A stretch of 64,000 nt of DNA, taken from contig OZ116698.1 in assembly GCA_964199315.1 (NCBI GenBank), positions 11,222,001 to 11,286,000 on the forward strand, given 5' to 3'. Both the position numbers and the translations under genes were made by a program. This document shows, piece after piece, positions 783 to 14,149 of this stretch. The notes under the pieces are model-generated. The model had not been told where the DNA came from. It did no database searches and worked only from the letters and a program-made list of their open reading frames with translations. The stretch's first letter is position 1, and each line of letters begins with the position of its first letter. This DNA is from Orbicella franksi (Eukaryota).

Positions 783-905
783 TACCCTGGTCCCAGAGGT
801 TTTACTTGATTTTTCTTTTCGCGACTCGTGTTTTCACTGCTTTGCGGCTCTCTAGCAGCTCTCTCATGCGGAGAAAAATTAAGCAAAACCTCTGGGACCA
901 GGGTA
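783..905. mobile_element. 123-bp MITE with 17-bp TIRs and 9-bp TSD (Mutator-like TSD length)
   Basis: TIRs TACCCTGGTCCCAGAGG / CCTCTGGGACCAGGGTA. Direct repeat TTGCAGATC at 774-782 and 906-914. Confidence 0.8.
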
Positions 906-1009
906 TTGCAGATCTGTCGCCTGGCGAGTCCTCTTTACATACAGTAGCACTCAGGTCACGCAAAAGTAGAAATATAAGGATTTGTATGGGAAAACGTTTA
1001 TATTCTTAA

Positions 1010-1229
1010 GGGCCCATTAATCCCGATAAGGTAATTTGCCTGGGAGCCTTTACATTTTTTCTGTATTAGTCACATGACCATGGGCGTGGCCTGATGAAGT
1101 CATCACTAGTGTTACTGATCATGAAAAAGTTAAAACACATGAAATAAATCTGAACTAACTAAAAATAATGAGGTTATATGAGAATAAATTTTCCTTAGCA
1201 ACGGCTCAAAAAGATCGGTTAATGGGCCC
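1010..1229. mobile_element. MITE with TTAA target duplication (Kolobok- or Harbinger-like)
   Basis: Termini GGGCCCATTAATCCCGAT / ATCGGTTAATGGGCCC, flanked by TTAA at 1006-1009 and 1230-1233. Confidence 0.7.
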
Positions 1230-1631
1230 TTAAGCCTTAAAGATACGAAGTAATATACGATGGTATTTCAAACAGGAAATTTAAGACAAGGTGTACAAGG
1301 AGGAATCTTCCTATCTTTACCGACAACAACGGCTACACCAGCTCTCTCCAAACCTCTGGCAATATCCTTCAGTGATAACTACAAAAAACAGGTTAATTGT
1401 CATTTTGATGACTGTCGTATTGTACTAAGTTATTTATAAATAATTTGTGTTGGCTACGAAACTAGTGCAAATGGAAATTTTTAGGCTTCAAACACTGAAA
1501 CATTTGGAGATTGAAAGCAATATTGTGTTAAAATGGAAATGTACAAAGTGTAATTTTGATAGGTAACCATCATTTAGACAAGATTTGACCAGGTTTCCAT
1601 TTTCTGGTATCAAAATATTTTGCGATCAATG

Positions 1632-2309
1632 TCATTGTAGAGTGTATGGTTTCCAATCAAAAGTTTCCATCACCTCAACCCCTTTGTCTCGCATGCACTG
1701 CACTGCTTTTTCAACAGGCGAAATCATTTCAACATCAGCACCACCACAAGCGCAATGCGGATTGCGTGACGGTTCAACATCACCAAAATCCATGTACAAC
1801 TGTAGACAACTGGGGCACCTTGGAACGTAATTACGTTTTCTAGCTCCACACAAACTTAGATCCACTATAACTTGCAGACCTTTACTAGCAAAAGCCGTCT
1901 GAGTTCGCATAGCACTGACTCGCACACAGCTTGTAGTTGTGCAGCCACCCATCACTAAAGTATTGGTTCCCTGTTTGAGCAATTCCTGCTCAACCCATTC
2001 TCTGAAACCCTTGGCGTCCATGGCAGATGTGTTGGGTTTAATAACATATCGCTGATTTTTATCGACTACAGAAGCTACACTGTCCTGAAGTTCAAAGTCG
2101 CTGCCTCCAAATGGGCAACGAGTCATCAGCGTTGGCACATTGTTTAATCCAGAGCGTAGAAGCTTCGCACAATTTTGAAAACTGCTCTTGATCGGTTCAA
2201 CCTCTTCGTCTGGTAAATAAGCCCGCCATATTCCGTCCACAAACGCTCGTTGTAGGTCAATAAGCAGTAATCCAACTGGTCTTGGCACAGAGGCCGCATG
2301 GAAGGCCAT
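1632..2309 (-). CDS. Isochorismatase-like (cysteine hydrolase superfamily) protein, 225 aa, intronless
   Basis: Uninterrupted ORF with the Asp-Lys-Cys triad context: LLLIDLQ (Asp), YVIKPNTSAM (Lys), LVMGGCTTTSCVRVS (Cys), then VIVDLSLCG. A C-terminal Cys-rich insert reads CPSC...PHCAC. Confidence 0.85.
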   Translation of the reverse strand: MAFHAASVPRPVGLLLIDLQRAFVDGIWRAYLPDEEVEPIKSSFQNCAKLLRSGLNNVPTLMTRCPFGGSDFELQDSVASVVDKNQRYVIKPNTSAMDAKGFREWVEQELLKQGTNTLVMGGCTTTSCVRVSAMRTQTAFASKGLQVIVDLSLCGARKRNYVPRCPSCLQLYMDFGDVEPSRNPHCACGGADVEMISPVEKAVQCMRDKGVEVMETFDWKPYTLQ

Positions 2310-2349
2310 TGACTCTCGACTTTAGTTACAACAGACTGTAAACGACCAC

Positions 2350-2390
2350 TCCGTTTTTCCGGAATCTCTTCATCATGTCGCCATCTTGGA
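2350..2390 (-). promoter_or_regulatory. Putative core promoter of the hydrolase gene (YY1-like AAGATGGCG, ETS-like TTCCGG)
   Basis: CGCCATCTT at 2379-2387 (AAGATGGCG on minus) and TTCCGGAA near 2357-2364, 45-80 bp upstream of the ATG. These are motif matches only. Confidence 0.35.
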
Positions 2391-2589
2391 TTCAGGATAT
2401 CTTAGTACCAGATCCCGCCCGTTGAGAGCCCACCGTCGGCACGGTCCCCTCGGGGAATCTGGAACTGGGTGGAGGCTGGTGACTTGCAATCAACGTCAAG
2501 ACAATCACAATAAACATGTGTTTGAATAACTTTATCAGGCGCCCCTTCCTATTTAGGCTTCTTACCTATCGTCTCCTTTTCCAAAACGA

Positions 2590-2796
2590 AGTTAAACTAC
2601 GTGTGTCTTATTATTTTGGGTGGCCGTTAAATAGGGGTAAGGACAATAAGGGAACTTGCCCTCATCGGGACGACCAAAATGTCGCTGCTGCTGCTTTATA
2701 GAGGTGGTCGGCTAATAGGGGTTTCGTCTGCAGTATTTCACTGACAATGATTTCGGGACTTCGAGAACTGGCCGCTTAATAGAAGTTCGACTGTAA
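2590..2796. mobile_element. One-ended remnant of a Tc1/mariner (pogo-like) MITE
   Basis: Ends in GGCCGCTTAATAGAAGTTCGACTG-TA, resembling the right TIR of the complete element at 59919-60358. No matching left end is seen. Confidence 0.5.
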
Positions 2797-2994
2797 AAGA
2801 GTTTGCTGTACTATTTCAGCTATTTAGGCATCCGAGGTTGCTGGAGCAATTTCGGATGCAAGAAGTGCAAAACTTCGTGATTTCACTTAGCCAGGAATAA
2901 AAAGAAAAAGAAATTACCCGATTCATTGTCTGCTTTCCTTTTGTCTTTAAGTTTCGTTTAAATGCATTTTCAAATACCCAACATTCATCATATC

Positions 2995-3456
2995 ATATAC
3001 AGGCAAAAACTAACGATAGATAAATCCGACGTTTCGGCGACATCTTGGCGCCATTGTCAAGGGAAACTAATTAAATATGCGATTTCAAGAGTAACTAAGA
3101 GTTCAGAGTTTCTAATTTGCATAAGTTAGACAAAGACTTTAGCGCGAACTGAGTCTGATTGTACATTTAAACACGGTCGTAATTGAAAAAATGCCACAAC
3201 AAGTTTGATTGTCTCATTAATGAGATGTTACACATTAAACAATTACGACCGTGTTTAAATGTACAATCAGACTCAGTTCGCGCTAAAGTCTTTGTCTAAC
3301 TTATGCAAATTAGAAACTCTGAACTCTTAGTTACTCTTGAAATCGCATATTTAATTAGTTTCCCTTGACAATGGCGCCAAGATGTCGCCGAAACGTCGGA
3401 TTTATCTATCGTTAGTTTTTGCCTGTATATGTTTATCTAAATCATTGTTGATTAGA
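2995..3456 (+). mobile_element. 5'-truncated Penelope-like retroelement with inverted terminal duplication (perfect 192-bp hairpin) and 12-bp TSD
   Basis: Arms 2994-3185 and 3240-3431 are exact reverse complements around a 54-nt spacer. Positions 3186-3299 translate to KKCHNKFDCLINEMLHIKQLRPCLNVQSDSVRAKVFV*, typical of the C-terminus of Penelope GIY-YIG endonucleases. Direct repeat ATTCATCATATC at 2983-2994 and 3457-3468. Confidence 0.85.
3362..3399 (+). ncRNA. Minimal type-I hammerhead-ribozyme-like motif, U3-A8 core variant (mirror copy on minus at 3026-3063)
   Basis: CC-UUGACAA-U-GGCG(ccaagaugu)CGCC-GAAA-CGUC-GG: core variant UUGAnAA, stem II GGCG/CGCC, GAAA, palindromic ACGU stem III and a GUC cleavage triplet. 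It sits in a Penelope-type terminal repeat, where minimal hammerheads are known to occur. Confidence 0.55.
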
Positions 3457-6615: not shown

Positions 6616-8626
6616 ACCATTCGTCACCTTTTTGTTATCTTTTCTTAGAATACAACAGAATGTGTATGATCATTTTCACATAACATTTTACCTTAATACA
6701 AAAACACAAGCACAATCTTCATGTGCATTTGACACGAAAAAGACAATTTCTTTAACTGTAGCATGCCTACAGGTTCAATTAGAAGCAACTCATAAAAATT
6801 AAGCCCTTCATAAAGCTGCAGATCACAATTTAAACAGTTTAATAAATATTCTAGAAGAGTAACTCACTTAAATCTCAAAGCAAGAACGTTATTTATAGTT
6901 GTTGAGGCAGGGAGGGGGCAGGGGCCATGCAGAAAAAAAAGCCTTGGGAGGGCTATGGAAGGTTTGAGGGGAAAAGCCAGGAAATGAGAATTCTAAGGAG
7001 GCACAGAGGCCCAATGTGCGGACACACATGATGAGGATTGATGATGACAATGATGACTATGATGAGAGGAGTACAAAAAAAATGTCTCCACTAGTGAGAC
7101 TTCAGTCATAAAATTAGTTCCAAGTTATTTATATTGAAACCCTGAAGTTTGGAGGGTGGGGTATTTGAAGTGGGAGAGAGGGGAGTACAACAAACAGGGG
7201 CTGCTGGACCCTGTCATTTAATATCTATCTTAATTTGGTAGATTTGATAATTTTTCAATCATAGGTCTGAGAAGGCATTAAATGAATACCTTCCACATAT
7301 ATATTATCTTAACCCTTTCAATCATGCCAAGGAGTGAGCAATCTCTAACAAACTTTTGTAGGGATGACAGGATAATTACAAACCTGATAACCTTGGGAAG
7401 TAATATCTGGACTAAAAACAAGACTATCCCCAAGACAAAATTTGCAAAATATACCAAAAGGTTATGGATAGAATTCCTAGAGTTGTGCCACAAAGCTGAC
7501 ATAAAAGCTTGAATTTAAAGACGTTTATGAATATAACCTGAACAATGCTGTGGTTATTTTCCCTTATACTATAAACAAGACTATGTATAGCTTAAGGGTA
7601 TAAAGTAATGATAAAAATATGAAGGGGATTCCCTTATGAAGAACTCAGCCTCATCCTGCCAGATGTAACAACAGGAAAGGACACAGAAATGCCAGTGGGT
7701 TCCCTGTGACAAATATTCTTAGACAGTTATATTTTAACTAACCAGCAATGAACAGCCAATCTTTGGATTTCAATTTGTAAGAGCCTTAGAAGAAATACAT
7801 GTATATGGGGTTTTCAGTGACCCAATTCCTCATTAATGCTTCCTTCATAAGCCAACCCTACCTGATCCACAGACAATGAAATATATTGACCCTAAAAATT
7901 GCCCAAAGATGTTTCAAGGGATACTAAAAGCAAACTTCAAACCCCTGAAAGAGTAAAACAACACACCAAAATAATGCAATAGGCATTATTCTTGTAAAAA
8001 AAACCTGAACATGTGATCACAAGCTTGTCACATTATTAAAAGGTAATCATGTCTAACAGTATTTTTGCTGCAAAAAGCATTTTATGAGGACTAACATTAA
8101 GTTCTCTCTAGTTCAACAAAAGAGATCATTTGTACCAGTTCCAAGTACACCATTTAAAACTATTCCTGGTTGAGGACTATGAAAGCTTCTTAGTAAACTG
8201 CTCAAAAGATGGGGTAAACCCCACGTGGTAGTTTACAAATATAATAATGTAACTTCCTTATTTGCAACTCTCCACTCTCAAAAAGGCCTGGTAACATTTT
8301 GGGCTTCAGCCACAAAATACTGTCACTTACAAGACAGACAGTTTACTGGCCACTAAAGAAATATTAAGTGACATTACAATAGTTTAAATGGTTTGAAATA
8401 TTATGCAAGAAGATATCAGCCTTCCCAATGAAAAAATTTAAAGAACTGGTAAGATACTCATTATCCACCACCATACCAGGGTCACATAACAACAAAAAAA
8501 ACAACTGTGGGAAGCCAGGTACTGGAAGTGAATTATTGGCAGTTTTTTGTTCTTTTCTCAGCTCCCCAAAATATGCACACAAAAATGGCAAGTTAGATTT
8601 TGGGGATAAAGATGATAATAAACAAT

Positions 8627-8980
8627 AATTATTGGATGAGGTTTTTGTGATATCCAGAATAATAAAGGTCGAGGTAGGGGTTATCAGCTGACGCTGAAGG
8701 CTGAGGCTGATAACCCTTACAGAGACCTTGATTATTCTGGATATCACAAAAACCGAATCTAATAATGAAAATAAAAAAATGGAGGTCACGTTTTTTTTTG
8801 CTTCTTCACTGATGGCAAGCAACACAAAGTGCACAAACTTGACATGATTACCCGTGACCTAGAGCGTCCTTGACATAATTATTGTATAATCTGCAGAGAT
8901 GACGTGACAGGCACTGATTTCAAAAATTCACTGTACGCTTTTGGCCAATCAGAAAAGAGATAGTGAGTTCGATGTATAAT
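8627..8980. mobile_element. Palindromic (foldback) interspersed repeat
   Basis: Near-perfect ~50-bp arms GTTTTTGTGATATCCAGAATAATAAAGGTC...GGGTTATCAGC / GCTGATAACCC...GACCTTGATTATTCTGGATATCACAAAAAC (8641-8753), plus a non-palindromic tail. Confidence 0.7.
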
Positions 8981-9561
8981 AAGTTAGATTATTGGTAACT
9001 TGATTCAAGCTTGGTATCAAATGACAAAAGCAATATGAATCTGGGTAAAAAGACAACAAACAGGCTGACACAGGCATTTGGAATAAGTGGGAAAATGAAA
9101 ATGAGTAACTAGAGAAAAAAGCCAGCACTTAAACATGTAGTAGACAAAGGCAAATCCTGGATACAGGCTGTAAGCCCTAACATGTAGTTAACTTAAGATC
9201 ATCACCCTTAAGCTTAACAAACTTGTCATTTGATTGGTAAAATACATATACACCTATAGGCAATATGCATCAGGAATGATTGACTGTGTATACAGTCTTA
9301 ATCTAGCACATCACTTATTTTACAACATTTTTGTCTCATTTCCTTCACATCAATCAAGAGTTCAGATGAAAAGAACACAAGCTTGCTTGCACTATAAAAC
9401 AAACAGACCCTTGTTGAATATGGTTAGTGTATGACCCTCATCCTATCTGATAATACTGTAGATACCTCAGGTTTGTAGTCTAATTAGAATTAACAACTGA
9501 TCATTACCTTTTCAGTGGTAACTACATGAGAGATGAAGCTGTGCAAAGGCTTCAAAGTCTT

Positions 9562-10995
9562 TCACCAATTACCTGAGTGAGTGACAGGGGGTGGACCATA
9601 AGCTCGAAGCTCATCTATTAACTGAAGCACCTTAAGTGCAGGGCCAACCTTCATGAAATGTAACAGTGTGTCTCTGTTTAATAACATCAGTGCCCTGCCG
9701 TCAATCTCCTGCTCTTGAAAGAATCCTGCATACTCAGCACAGTCACTGTTGTAAAAAAACTGAACCACATCTGCTGTGCTCCACAAGGACACACTAGGCC
9801 TTGGCTGGGAATTCCATTGTTCCATACTTTTGGTTCTGTCAGGACTGACGATAGGCTTGTCTCTGCCGTTGGACCATGACAGGACTGTTGTGCCTCCTGG
9901 TGGACTCAAAGAGGATGAACCTTGTACTCCATCCTGTCTCCATGAATGAACATCACTTTCTTCAGAGTGATTCCAAGTTGGAGCATTCTTGTTTTCCATA
10001 ACTGAGTGATTTAGAGGAGACAGTCTAATATGTGAAAAAGTGGAGGCTACTGTAGCCATACCATTTTCCATAGACACGGGTTTTTGCATTCCAGCTGCCT
10101 GGTTTGATGTTCCTGAAGTTCCTTGGTATGGCCTAAAGGCAGAGGTACTTGCACTAATAGAAGCATCAGTGTTATTGGGAAAATTATCAGGAGAAGTTTG
10201 AAAATCAGAAACAGCATTTTGATGAACTGTTGTGTTTTGTCTTGAAACAATTGGCGCAGGGGGTAGCTCTGATCTGCTTGTAGAAGGTACACCTTGAAAG
10301 GAGTGAGAATCATGGGAGGCTTTCGATTCCAAAGACTTGAGGGAAGAATCTTTGCGAAATCGAGGTGCGAGCGCTCGGTTTTCATTAACCTTCTTAGGGG
10401 GTGATGATTTGACAGAAGTGCCATTAAATAACATAACATCACTATTATGCAGTCTGCCATCCTTGAGACGACAGTCAGATGAGCTCATGACATAAGTTAC
10501 TCTTTGACTCCCTTCTTTTTTGTTTTCATTGCTCTTCTTGCTGCCTTCCTCTGATGATTTATCACCATCATGATGTTTCACGTTTGGAGAAGGACGTCTT
10601 CTAATCCTTTCTGACATATAAGCAGGCCTCACTGCCAAGATGCTTCCATTGAGCGTGTAGCCATTAAACTGTGACAGTGCAGTGTGGGCTTCTTTAGACG
10701 ATGCAAACTTAACAAATGCATAAGCTAATGAATGAGAGTCCACATGACTAGTACGACGTGGTCTTGACTCCATAAGTTTACATACGGCAACCTTACCAAC
10801 AACAGAGAACGTTCTGTTCAGCTCCTTCTCTGAGATGTCTTCTGGAAGATTACTCACATGCACACCATACAAACCGTACATGTCTCTTGGAATGACTGAA
10901 CAATTATCGTCGACGTCTTCTGCTTTCTGGCTTAAAGGTTTAAACGAGTTGCCTGATTTGTCCTCATACTGAAAAAGTTCTTCTGAGCTACTCAT
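9562..10995 (-). CDS. RRM + low-complexity linker + Ph/Scm-class SAM domain protein, 477 aa, single coding exon
   Basis: RNP2 VHVSNL and RNP1 AYAFVKF mark the RRM (~10870-10630). The C-terminal WSTADVVQFF...FQEQEIDGRALMLL...MKVGPALKV is a SAM domain (~9800-9600). A splice acceptor (tttcag|G) lies immediately before the ATG at 10995, so the first 14 aa of the ORF-track call are intronic and an upstream non-coding exon is implied. Confidence 0.85.
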   Translation of the reverse strand: MSSSEELFQYEDKSGNSFKPLSQKAEDVDDNCSVIPRDMYGLYGVHVSNLPEDISEKELNRTFSVVGKVAVCKLMESRPRRTSHVDSHSLAYAFVKFASSKEAHTALSQFNGYTLNGSILAVRPAYMSERIRRRPSPNVKHHDGDKSSEEGSKKSNENKKEGSQRVTYVMSSSDCRLKDGRLHNSDVMLFNGTSVKSSPPKKVNENRALAPRFRKDSSLKSLESKASHDSHSFQGVPSTSRSELPPAPIVSRQNTTVHQNAVSDFQTSPDNFPNNTDASISASTSAFRPYQGTSGTSNQAAGMQKPVSMENGMATVASTFSHIRLSPLNHSVMENKNAPTWNHSEESDVHSWRQDGVQGSSSLSPPGGTTVLSWSNGRDKPIVSPDRTKSMEQWNSQPRPSVSLWSTADVVQFFYNSDCAEYAGFFQEQEIDGRALMLLNRDTLLHFMKVGPALKVLQLIDELRAYGPPPVTHSGNW

Positions 10996-11417
10996 CCTGA
11001 AAGGTATATAACGAAAGATAATATAATTTAATTTCACATCAAAGACTTTTTGAGCGGAAAAATGACAGCTAAACAGTCGGTTGATTTTTTTCCGAATAAT
11101 TTACTATTTGCTACTGTTGCTGTCAACAAATTACACTAATACTGTGTTAAGACAATTCTAGCTCCGGAAAAATCTCCAGGAATCACAAACCTGCGTTCTT
11201 CACACAAAATCTATCAACAGCCTACAATGCATCAAGCGTCGATTCAACACAAAACTTCACGTGGTGAACGGATCAATGACAAGACCTGGTTACTAAGCGC
11301 TCCATGCTCAACTTTCTCTCCCCTGGCACGAGTGTTGCCCATGGCAACGGGAAAGGAGTAGAACTTTTTCAAAAGTACTTTGGGAAGTCTTAAATACTGC
11401 GGTGCCTACAATAGATC

Positions 11418-11548
11418 GGCAGACGTTCTTATGGCTCGTCACGCAATCTTTCCTCTCCAACGAGTGGCCAAACCATGTACCAGAGCCAAACAAACGTTTG
11501 TTGGGGAGGAAAGATTGCGTGACGAGCGCTAGGCATAACGACGTCTGC
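11418..11548. mobile_element. Short palindromic MITE-like element
   Basis: Arms GCAGACGT...GCTCGTCACGCAATCTTTCCTC / GAGGAAAGATTGCGTGACGAGC...ACGTCTGC. Confidence 0.65.
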
Positions 11549-14149
11549 GTACTCGGTCACTTTTACATGGGAGCCTCGTTCATCGAGCCTCAGCTATTGT
11601 CGGGAGAAAGGCTGTAGCTATTTTCTGCGGCCATAAAACTATTTCGCACAAGTTCTACAGGCTTGTTAATTTTGTAGTTGAGAGTTCATGAAGGTGACTT
11701 CACTTTCATGTAAGTTCAATAAGCCTTTTGCAACAGTTGGTCACGAGACCGATCATTTCTCAACTTTTAGCCAAATGAATTTTAGACCTGGAAAATGCAT
11801 GTTTTAAATGGCGAGAACAACAATTTCCAAACCAATTCTATGTAAGCTTGAGGTTTAATGACGATTTGAATATTGCAAAAATTGGAAGGTTTTGTATAGA
11901 AGCGAGGAGGCTTTGCCCTCCACAAACCTTTTCGTTTATTAATCCCTAAAAGAGGAAGCTGCTGGCATTTAACCATTGGAGAGAGAAAGAGGGGTAAAAC
12001 ATTAGGACGAATGGAAAATTCTAAGCTCTTAAACCCAAAGGCAGCTTGAAAACTTGCAAAATGACAAGGGTTCGCATTGAACACCACTGGAGCGTAACTG
12101 AAGGGCAAAGCGTCTTCTTCGTATACAAATCCCTTCTAAGTTCTAACGTCCATAAAAATGTCCTGTTAAAGGATATAAACCTGAAAATTTACATGTAAGA
12201 TAATTTAAATATTCTTTCTATTTCGGATAACATTTTGCCTTGCCAACGATTAAATCAGTGTGTTCTTGAAAAGGACGTCACGCGGCCAACTGTTGCAAAA
12301 GGTCTATTTTGAACGCAATTCACTTCAACTATAAGCACAGGCGACTATATTTATTCATCCGCAGGCTATTGAGAAGATTGTTTTTATTGCTTTTAGCATT
12401 CTATTCACAAAATCTCTTTGTCCGTTTTGCTTTCCAGATTTCATCGTTGAATGAAGTCTTCTTCTGGGCTTAAATATTTTTAACAGTTGAACTATTTTTA
12501 TTACTTTTATTATATAATTACATCTCTAGTAGTTAACACAATAAAACAGATCTTCGAGTTAAAAAGATAGCCTTGATGTGGGAACAATTTTCTTTTAACT
12601 CAAGAGCTTTTTCGACAATGACAACATCTCTATCTACCTCACGCACTTTCTTATAATTAAAAAGTCTTCTTTAAATAAAAATTTACTTCCTAATAAATAT
12701 ATTGATACTTTGGAATTTAAAGCAGCTATAACGCGCCACATATTTCAAAACAATTAACGGCGATGGTCGGGAGGGGGGTGGCATGGCAACTACCTTACAG
12801 CTGATCTTACAGCTTCTTCTAGTTTCCATGACGCCAAAGGACTTGCCGCGAGTCTCCCCTCCCCTCCACCTGTGGATGGGGCACGTATCTACAGTACCTC
12901 CTAATTGAAGGGAATTTGACGTACCTCACAATAATAGATAGCTTCGATACAAAAACACCGCAAGGGCGATAATAAAGCTTCCCAATGGAAACAAGAACAA
13001 AAACGGAAAGATTGATGATTACGGGCGACGCGCTTGAAAAGTTCAGTCTAAAGTTTTCAAGAAGTACTCGATAAGTGCTGTTGCTCCTTTACAACAAAGA
13101 ATATGTACAAATGATAATGTGTAATAAAATAGTAGCAGTAGTTATTGCTCTCGTTGTTCCCGTTGCTGCTTTTTTGGGTTGTTTTTAATTACAATGAACA
13201 CTTATCAACTCACATGGGTAAACTGACTAGAGCATTGCCAGCATGATTAGAGCCTGTGCGCTTACCCAGCTGATAACGAGCGATTTTGGGGAATCTGTCG
13301 GTTGTAAAACCTAAAAATAAAGATTTGACTCCCACATCCAATCACTGCCCGGCACATTTAGCGTAATCAGCTAATCGCAAGTAGCATTAGAAGCATTTAA
13401 CCAGTGGCAACTACGGCAAAAATCGCGATGTCCAAGCATGATTGCTTTAGGTTTGGTATAAGATTGAATGAAAAGATATCTTCATTTTCATTAGTCAGTG
13501 TATCAGGTCATTGCAAAAGAAAATAAGAGTTTTAGCTTAACTTAAACGGTTGAGAATCAGACCTCTAAATGACCGTGGTTTTCCCAAACAACCCTTAACC
13601 ACTTGCGTCATCAGAATTAACACGACTGAAAATTCTTCAGTCTTTTAAATTGATCAACTACGTAATCTCTTCCCTCTGACAAGAGGAAAGTCACATCTGA
13701 AATCTGGAAGCCCTTAATACCTCATTATGGACTTTAAATTAGTACCTACAATTTGTTACTTCGGAACGAGAAGCAAATGTGTCTGTGATAATCGTGGACA
13801 TAAAATTAAGACTTGTTTGGCCTAATGCGATCATTGTCCAGCAATTTTCAAAATCTAAACTTCAGCGGCAAGCCATAATCCATTCACGGCTATCAATAAA
13901 ATACGTCATCTTTAGTTTGTCATTGGCTTTTGGAATTTGGTGTAACAAATTGTGTGGTTAGGTCTCAAAGCAGTCTTGTGTTTACGTGATGGAGGAGTTG
14001 TCAGAGATGTTTGGGAAGAGAGGGGAGGGGGAGGAGGAGTGGGAGAAGAGGAGAGGGTAAGGTATAATTAGGGGGCAATACAAGTTAACTTTGACCTCTA
14101 CATAACTTCCTAGTTGCCTAAAAGCTTCTATGATGAACTGAAGTCGTTC

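Follow-up and report, generated by a model that had tools for sequence, protein, structure and literature searches.

Polymers of SAM domains are a recurring builder of large assemblies, such as Polycomb bodies and the silencing granules of Bicaudal-C. Polymerisation of Bicc1 regulates the localisation and silencing of the mRNA that it binds (PMC4561730). The Caenorhabditis elegans protein SOP-2 combines a SAM domain with an intrinsically disordered region (IDR), and both RNA and SAM oligomerisation modulate its condensates (PMC7026206). In Polyhomeotic (Ph), both oligomerisation and phase separation are tuned by the disordered linker that adjoins the SAM (PMC13449738; PMC10634872). Here we describe a gene of the coral Orbicella franksi, lying in a 64,000-nucleotide stretch of contig OZ116698.1 (positions 11,222,001 to 11,286,000, hereafter the window), whose product joins an RRM to a Polycomb-class SAM. 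This RRM-SAM gene is transcribed and under purifying selection, the two domains are connected by a long linker, and the contact surfaces of the SAM are conserved within its family. The protein may act as an RNA-binding SAM scaffold.

Likeness to known systems

Bicaudal-C (BICC1) shares its general layout with the RRM-SAM protein: modules of a single-stranded-RNA-binding type come first, a long disordered linker follows, and the chain closes with a SAM, which polymerises in BICC1. However, its RNA-binding modules are KH domains and not an RRM, and its SAM belongs to another subclass (E 0.22, against 1e-10 for the Polycomb SAMs). BicC is pan-metazoan, whereas the RRM-SAM family was seen in Hexacorallia only. 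The identification of the protein as Bicaudal-C was rejected on these grounds, as Pfam gave no KH match and the SAM class differed. SOP-2 is similar in design: it is lineage-restricted, it binds RNA, its long IDR is combined with a SAM that oligomerises, and its nuclear condensates are tuned by RNA and by SAM oligomerisation (PMC7026206). In contrast to the RRM-SAM protein, SOP-2 is nematode-specific and has no RRM; the two were compared by description only. Regions other than an RRM give it its RNA binding (Zhang et al. 2004, cited in PMC7026206).

The SAM class, the residues of the mid-loop (ML) and end-helix (EH) surfaces and the position of the SAM at the C terminus after a disordered linker are shared with Ph/PHC, Scm/SCML2/SCMH1, Sfmbt, L3MBTL and SAMD1. 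These proteins carry MBT, SLED, FCS, HD1, winged-helix or PHD domains, whereas the RRM-SAM protein has an RRM and a loop deletion instead. A C-terminal Polycomb-class SAM is common to the RRM-SAM protein, Scm, Ph, Sfmbt, L3MBTL and SAMD1, and does not define Scm. Smaug and Vts1 likewise contain a SAM and are post-transcriptional regulators, but their own SAM binds RNA hairpins, while in the RRM-SAM protein RNA binding would fall to the RRM. The RRMs closest to that of the RRM-SAM protein in sequence and structure are found in ELAV/Hu, Sxl and PABP. Each of those proteins carries between two and four RRMs but lacks a SAM, in contrast to the single RRM here, with its His in RNP2 and its N-terminal extension.

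Domain architecture of the RRM-SAM protein

In the list of open reading frames (ORFs) of the window, a 491-codon ORF occupies 9562..11037 on the minus strand. From the first ATG, the coding sequence (CDS) runs from 10995 to 9565 and encodes 477 amino acids (aa), with the stop codon at 9562-9564. The plus-strand frame at 9562-10995 contains many stops throughout. An earlier note on this DNA had placed the gene at 9562-10995, which is correct, and had not named the strand, which is minus. The motifs quoted there are all present: VHVSNL at residues 45-50, AYAFVKF at 91-97, EIDGRALMLL at 430-439 and KVGPALK at 449-455. The encoded protein is identical at 476 of 477 residues to XP_020612298 of Orbicella faveolata (RefSeq), and the stretch is present once in the 497-Mb assembly, as a single copy.

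An AlphaFold2 (AF2) model built from a 30-sequence family alignment had two confident domains, the RRM (~36-127) and the SAM (~400-468), both with a predicted local distance difference test (pLDDT) score above 90; residues 128-399 scored below 50 almost throughout. Pfam agreed with this model, so that the order of RRM, linker and C-terminal SAM read earlier from the letters was borne out. A Pfam scan of the protein at E<=1 returned RRM and SAM models only, with no MBT, SLED/DUF3588, FCS or KH match. The parts of the coding sequence are as follows.

9565..10995, minus strand: complete CDS, 477 aa, one coding exon (ORF list and translation)
10891..10995, minus strand: N-terminal tail, aa 1-35, disordered, ending at the start of IPRD..GLYG (AF2 pLDDT below 50 for residues 1-31; alignment A2)
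10615..10890, minus strand: RRM domain, aa 36-127 (Pfam RRM_1, AF2 pLDDT above 90, PDB matches, Foldseek)
9799..10614, minus strand: disordered Ser-rich linker, aa 128-399 (pLDDT below 50 almost throughout, composition, conservation profile, and a ratio of nonsynonymous to synonymous substitution rates, dN/dS, of 0.31)
9592..9798, minus strand: SAM domain, aa 400-468, five helices, Polycomb class (Pfam SAM_1/SAM_2, PDB phmmer, AF2, Foldseek)
9565..9591, minus strand: C-terminal tail, aa 469-477, ending ...NGW/GNW (alignment A1; pLDDT below 50)

Class of the SAM domain

Pfam SAM_1 matched residues 404-464 (E 2e-6, 28.5 bits, cut-off 23), and SAM_2 was also above its cut-off. Modelled alone with AF2, the SAM formed five helices with pLDDT 94-98. 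A phmmer search of the PDB with the SAM gave 13 distinct best sequences that were all Polycomb-class (E 3.6e-10 to 5.5e-7), led by Sfmbt at 3.6e-10 and Ph at 9.4e-10 and followed by SAMD1, PHC3, Scm and L3MBTL3. The next SAM class was represented by ANKS4B at E 3.9e-3, with BICC1 at E 0.22. The structural comparison was consistent with this order, as Foldseek ranks 1-25 were all Polycomb-class with root-mean-square deviations of 1.1-2.2 Å. Smaug and Vts1 chains were neither among the phmmer matches at E<=1 nor in the Foldseek best 50, and a Smaug/Vts1 identity was rejected. Sequence and fold thus both place the SAM in the Ph/Scm/Sfmbt/SAMD1/L3MBTL class, in agreement with the Ph/Scm-type assignment of the earlier note. 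A word-indexed homologue search with the SAM region alone returned family members only, and a feature search of the ESM Atlas gave no usable match.

The same genome contains at least nine other Polycomb-class SAM exons (L005, L007-L013 and L015). L005 is Ph-like, L008 Scm-like and L012 SAMD1-like, L011 and L013 are L3MBTL-like, and L009 encodes a protein with a long IDR, a polyQ run and a SAM. In L007 and L010 an intron splits the SAM just before QEIDG; the RRM-SAM gene has no intron there.

Contact surfaces of the SAM domain

In the Scm:Sfmbt structure, the Scm ML contacts are A838, L841, L842, M846 and Y850 together with E833, D835 and K849, and the Sfmbt EH contacts are M1180, V1187, G1188 and L1191 together with D1177, K1186 and K1192 (PMC4863741). 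The Sfmbt SAM is monomeric, and R1170, in place of the conserved ML Ala, blocks its polymerisation (PMC4863741). We mapped these positions through PDB phmmer alignments and a 35-sequence SAM alignment, and scored their conservation over 30 family sequences.

9655..9708, minus strand: ML surface segment, E430-F447 (mapping onto the Scm:Sfmbt structure, PMC4863741)
9631..9651, minus strand: EH surface segment, K449-K455, KVGPALK (identity to the Sfmbt EH MKVGPALK, family conservation)

The two motifs thought earlier to correspond to the polymer surfaces indeed carry the ML and EH contact residues of the Scm:Sfmbt and Ph structures. On the ML side, E430, D432, A435, L438, L439, T443, H446 and F447 are the equivalents of Scm E833, D835, A838, L841, L842, M846, K849 and Y850. 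A435 and L438 were invariant (30/30), and L439 and F447 were found in 28/30. The residue A435 is thus kept where Sfmbt has the blocking R1170. The EH positions are D442, L445, K449, V450, G451, L454 and K455, with K449 and G451 conserved in 30/30 and L454 and K455 in 29/30. The stretch MKVGPALK is identical to that of Sfmbt (K1186, V1187, G1188, L1191, K1192). The sites of the Leu to Arg mutants used to crystallise Ph ('ALLLL' and 'GPALK', 1kw4 versus 1pk1) correspond to L438 and L454. Overall, the named ML and EH contact positions were kept or conservatively replaced across the 30 members. With the EH identical to that of Sfmbt and the Ph mutant sites L438 and L454 kept, both surfaces look intact at the sequence level, unlike those of Sfmbt. 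These features suggest that the SAM may oligomerise head to tail.

RRM domain, tails and linker

Pfam RRM_1 matched residues 46-118 (E 3.3e-11, 43.3 bits, cut-off 20.7). The modelled domain had the topology beta-alpha-beta-beta-alpha-beta, with pLDDT above 90. Its best PDB sequence matches were HuR RRM1 (domain E 5.8e-7, ~30% identity), PABP, HuD and Sxl, and its fold had a template modelling (TM) score of about 0.8 to HuR RRM1 and Fox1 in Foldseek. RNP2 reads VHVSNL (45-50) and RNP1 reads LAYAFVKF. In RNP1, F94 (position 5) was invariant in the family, and Y92 (position 3) was present in the coral-type sequences except one, which had His. The family also has its own signatures around the domain, IPRD..GLYG before it (I35, D38 and G41 invariant in the 30-sequence alignment A2) and VRPAY after it. 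The RRM is probably of the classical single-stranded-RNA type with a conserved N-terminal extension, and is a predicted RNA binder.

The linker (128-398, 271 aa) consists of Ser, Thr, Pro, Gln and Asn to 44%. The earlier description of a ~280-aa linker rich in S, T, P and Q held for length and general composition; the linker is rich in Ser (18.5%) and not in Gln (4.4%). Conserved islands within it are SSDCRLKDG (~172-180), LAPRFRK (~209-215) and SAFRPYQG (~285-292), none with an assignable function. At the C-terminal end, NGW was found in P0034 and in the five coral-type members outside Acropora, and NGQ in Acropora (alignment A1).

Transcript and selection

The RRM-SAM gene stretch was contained in 14 RNA runs. 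A contig of run X2 (record 3) was unbroken over 9121-10986 and a contig of run X4 over 9333-11019, the two runs coming from different studies. Since both contigs span the two domains without a break, the RRM and the SAM lie on one RNA. In the stranded run X21, first mates over 9176-9963 were on the plus strand, which agrees with minus-strand RNA.

The X2 contig also contained a joint from 10995 to 11190 ('CT..AC (cut +1)'). The intron acceptor tttcag ends one base short of the ATG, and the donor cag|gtttgt lies at 11190. Because the joint fits these acceptor and donor sequences, the gene has one coding exon, preceded by a first exon that is non-coding. The intron in the 5' untranslated region (UTR) was the sole intron seen and the coding ORF was uninterrupted, in line with the single coding exon proposed earlier.

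11191..11229, minus strand: non-coding first exon, 3' end, minimum extent (39 letters of the X2 contig beyond the joint)
10997..11190, minus strand: 5'-UTR intron, 194 nt, GT..AG (X2 contig joint and splice sites in the sequence)
9121..9561, minus strand: 3' UTR, minimum extent (RNA contig X2 record 3, unbroken from 9121 to 10986)

Against L018, an 87%-identical orthologue, the overall dN/dS was 0.35 (Nei-Gojobori); taken by region, the SAM gave 0.25, the linker 0.31 and the RRM 0.47, each value resting on small counts. The gene is under purifying selection. This value and the full-length orthologues at 40-89% identity place the gene far beyond chance. We conclude that the locus is a functional, weakly expressed, single-copy stony-coral gene. 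An Rfam scan of 8000-13600 gave no family match.

Family distribution and annotation

The word-indexed search returned 34 full-length proteins with both RRM and SAM, at 29-100% identity, the named genera being Orbicella, Oculina, Stylophora and Acropora. An exhaustive HMMER scan of 1.84 billion representatives added the Nematostella protein XP_032235569 (386 aa) and clusters P0034, P0039-P0042 and P0045. The Pfam SAM models miss most of the divergent members, which the family profile scores at 90-110 bits. P0039, P0041 and P0042 grouped with Nematostella (support 99/96), which suggests that they come from sea anemones. The CDS of P0039 and that of P0040 are unbroken at the genomic level, as is the frame of L018. 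The family-profile scan gave no further protein with both RRM and SAM among its best 150 representatives, and a profile search with the family alignment found, beyond the family, only Polycomb SAM proteins or generic RRM proteins. No bilaterian protein that combines an RRM with a Polycomb-class SAM turned up in the searches made. The family has so far been seen in Hexacorallia only (stony corals and sea anemones), which is a lower bound on its range.

A tree of the SAM domains (35 sequences, 79 columns), the comparison by which the earlier note would have placed the domain, located the family in the half that contains SCM and PHC, with support of 56/64. The backbone was unresolved, and monophyly of the family was neither recovered nor rejected (p value of the approximately unbiased test, p-AU, 0.32). 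The SCM clade was supported at 96/95 and did not include the RRM-SAM family. Trees of SAM domains of ~70 residues are poorly resolved in general (PMC10638273). In view of the unresolved backbone, we claim no sister group.

RefSeq names these proteins 'polycomb protein Scm-like' in Orbicella and Stylophora, 'polycomb protein Scm' in Nematostella and 'uncharacterized protein' in Oculina and Acropora. True Scm/SCML2/SCMH1 matches carry PF02820, PF12140 and PF00536. Since MBT, SLED and FCS are absent and an RRM is present, the protein is not Scm, and the RefSeq name is a misnomer. We found no published work on the gene name, the accessions, the pairing of an RRM with a Polycomb-class SAM, or a hexacorallian family with the loop deletion. 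The literature thus agrees with the earlier remark that no characterised animal protein is known to pair an RRM with a Ph-type SAM. The further suggestion of an undescribed system holds for the literature and not for the databases, where automatic RefSeq models already exist for all five genera. What is new is the pairing itself; both domains, and the design of an RNA binder with a polymerising SAM, are known.

Two groups of related proteins stood apart from the full-length members. P0038 (Acropora-type, 279 aa) matches the Acropora RRM-SAM protein exactly over roughly its first 205 residues, after which the frame is lost and the protein is truncated. An assembly error, an allele or an RRM-only isoform could account for it, and nothing similar was seen in the window. 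P0068, P0152 and P0178 are short SAM-only proteins (99-173 aa). With the family SAM profile they reached 80-84 bits, a score intermediate between those of the RRM-SAM family and those of classical Polycomb SAMs. They have no loop deletion, and P0152 and P0178 grouped with the SCM clade.

Neighbouring features

A single-exon gene of the isochorismatase family lies at 1644-2291 on the minus strand, ~7 kb downstream of the RRM-SAM gene, and is 72% identical to the 219-aa Acropora protein LOC141889065. At the L018 locus, a Pfam Isochorismatase gene likewise lies downstream of the RRM-SAM orthologue, and in Acropora the LOC number of the isochorismatase homologue is close to that of the RRM-SAM gene. 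The neighbour at L018 and the nearby Acropora LOC numbers indicate that this synteny is conserved. The 219-aa 'members' of the Acropora RRM-SAM cluster were considered as a truncated paralogue and rejected, as they are this unrelated neighbour gene.

An interspersed repeat of 355 bp occupies 8628-8982, ~580 bp downstream of the RRM-SAM stop codon. A first-pass search of the genome gave 988 candidate copies, of which those scored were full-length and 83-90% identical. The first 139 nt of the repeat match these copies on the opposite strand as well, so that it includes a long segment that is inverted or palindromic and resembles a miniature inverted-repeat transposable element. RNA contig depth over it was 800-3000, with loose ends at 8627/8628 and 8982, implying that many transcripts contain it. 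The short segment 11343-11539, upstream of the 5' exon, had raised RNA depth; loose ends lay at 11419 and at 11450, and three RNA runs skipped 53 nt there, from 11451 to 11505 (ACA in between). This segment behaves like a dispersed repeat or a variant copy elsewhere, unlike part of the RRM-SAM gene. A neighbouring transcript at 12328-13500 was far more strongly expressed, with RNA contig depth up to ~280 and many variant positions and small indels between runs. Its first mates in X21 were on the plus strand, as at the RRM-SAM gene.

Proposed mechanism and alternative explanations

In the mechanism that we propose, the RRM would bind RNA, and the SAM would join head to tail through its ML and EH surfaces, its partners being further copies of itself or the Ph/Scm-type SAMs of the same genome. 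The flexible linker would let many RRMs hang off the SAM oligomer. Such an assembly would bind RNA multivalently and serve as a scaffold, much as is the case for Bicaudal-C or SOP-2. It could act in the nucleus together with Polycomb proteins, or in the cytoplasm as BicC does. On balance we lean, by a little, towards this reading of the protein as an RNA-binding SAM scaffold, in which we infer the RNA binding, the oligomerisation and the cellular site.

A complex prediction with three copies of the SAM (aa 395-470) gave a median score of 0.25 against a mark of 0.32 and counts neither way. Several observations weigh against the scaffold reading. Membership in the class is insufficient to infer polymerisation, because the Sfmbt SAM, the best sequence match, is monomeric. 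The RRM-SAM proteins also have a 2-residue deletion in the loop between helix 4 and helix 5 (LLHFM--KVGPALK), between the ML aromatic F447 and the EH lysine K449. In the 35-sequence SAM alignment it was present in 13/13 RRM-SAM sequences and 0/22 other SAMs, and it was also absent from the other SAM exons of the same genome. This deletion could change polymer geometry or partner choice, and its uniqueness makes polymerisation uncertain from homology alone. At position 443, Thr or Ser replaces Scm M846, the sole named ML change in the surface test. Within the RRM, position 2 of RNP2 was His in 29/30 family sequences, where the consensus is Phe or Tyr, positions 1-2 of RNP1 are L-A and not K/R-G, and position 3 of RNP1 was aliphatic (Val/Ile) in the distant, anemone-type members. 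Finally, RNA depth over the gene was low in the adult-colony libraries sampled, which bears on the site or stage of action.

The departures in the RRM could mean that the domain is degenerate or of a protein-interaction type, and the protein a SAM scaffold unrelated to RNA. The RRM has the highest dN/dS of the structured parts, a further point against the RNA-binding scaffold, and the conserved extension IPRD..GLYG could lie across the sheet. However, F94 is invariant and Y92 is nearly constant in the coral-type sequences, His is able to stack on bases, and the nearest relatives in sequence and fold (HuR, HuD, Sxl, PABP) are true binders of single-stranded RNA, so that we hold the loss of RNA binding to be quite unlikely. 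The SAM, for its part, could be a heterotypic adaptor that docks by one surface onto Scm/Ph polymers, bringing an RNA module to nuclear Polycomb bodies or capping the polymer. The EH shared with Sfmbt, whose EH binds the Scm ML, fits such an adaptor, as does the rank of Sfmbt as best PDB sequence match. The loop deletion might have left one surface weaker, Ph-like and Scm-like SAMs are among those of the genome, and heterotypic SAM pairs are common in the class (PDB: Ph:Scm, Scm:Sfmbt, SAMD1:L3MBTL3). On the other side, the position of the disabling R1170 of Sfmbt is an invariant Ala here, and L438, L439 and F447 are kept. With this Ala and the ML hydrophobic residues in place, both surfaces look usable. 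We regard the adaptor as unlikely, though the likeliest of the alternatives. A more elaborate possibility is a Hexacorallia-specific bridge between RNA and Polycomb polymers, in which the SAM would co-polymerise with Ph/Scm SAMs, the loop deletion would tune the choice of partner or how long the polymer grows, and the RRM would recognise RNA that is nascent or non-coding. RNA would in this way directly recruit, seed or dissolve PRC1-type condensates in an animal of an early-branching lineage. We consider this bridge speculative and improbable.

Two simpler explanations were rejected. The intronless CDS and the low expression might point to a non-functional retrocopy or an annotation artefact. 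Yet the 477-codon frame is intact with a dN/dS of 0.35, full-length orthologues that likewise lack introns are found throughout the corals and among the distant members, and the gene has a spliced 5' UTR, RNA contigs over its CDS and conserved synteny. On selection, transcripts and synteny, we find a dead retrocopy very hard to credit. The RefSeq names would make the protein the coral orthologue of the Polycomb protein Scm; its SAM does resemble the Scm SAM, with F447 at the position of Scm Y850, and the tree puts the family in the weakly supported half with SCM and PHC. Against this, an RRM stands in place of the MBT, SLED/DUF3588 and FCS zinc finger domains, the genome has a separate Scm-like SAM exon (L008), and the tree does not put the family within the SCM clade. 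Orthology with Scm was rejected on domain content and has, in our judgement, next to no chance of being right.

Significance

The RefSeq name Scm is misleading, and taken at face value it would distort inventories of cnidarian Polycomb proteins. RNA input into Polycomb assemblies is still debated. In the RRM-SAM family, an RRM is fused to a SAM of the Polycomb class in which the two polymer surfaces are conserved, and selection has maintained this fusion in stony corals and sea anemones alike. Should the SAM form polymers, or enter those of Ph/Scm, the family would provide a natural and genetically tractable case of RNA-coupled SAM assembly, genetics being feasible because Nematostella has an orthologue. 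In that event the RRM-SAM family would also be a convergent counterpart of BicC and SOP-2.

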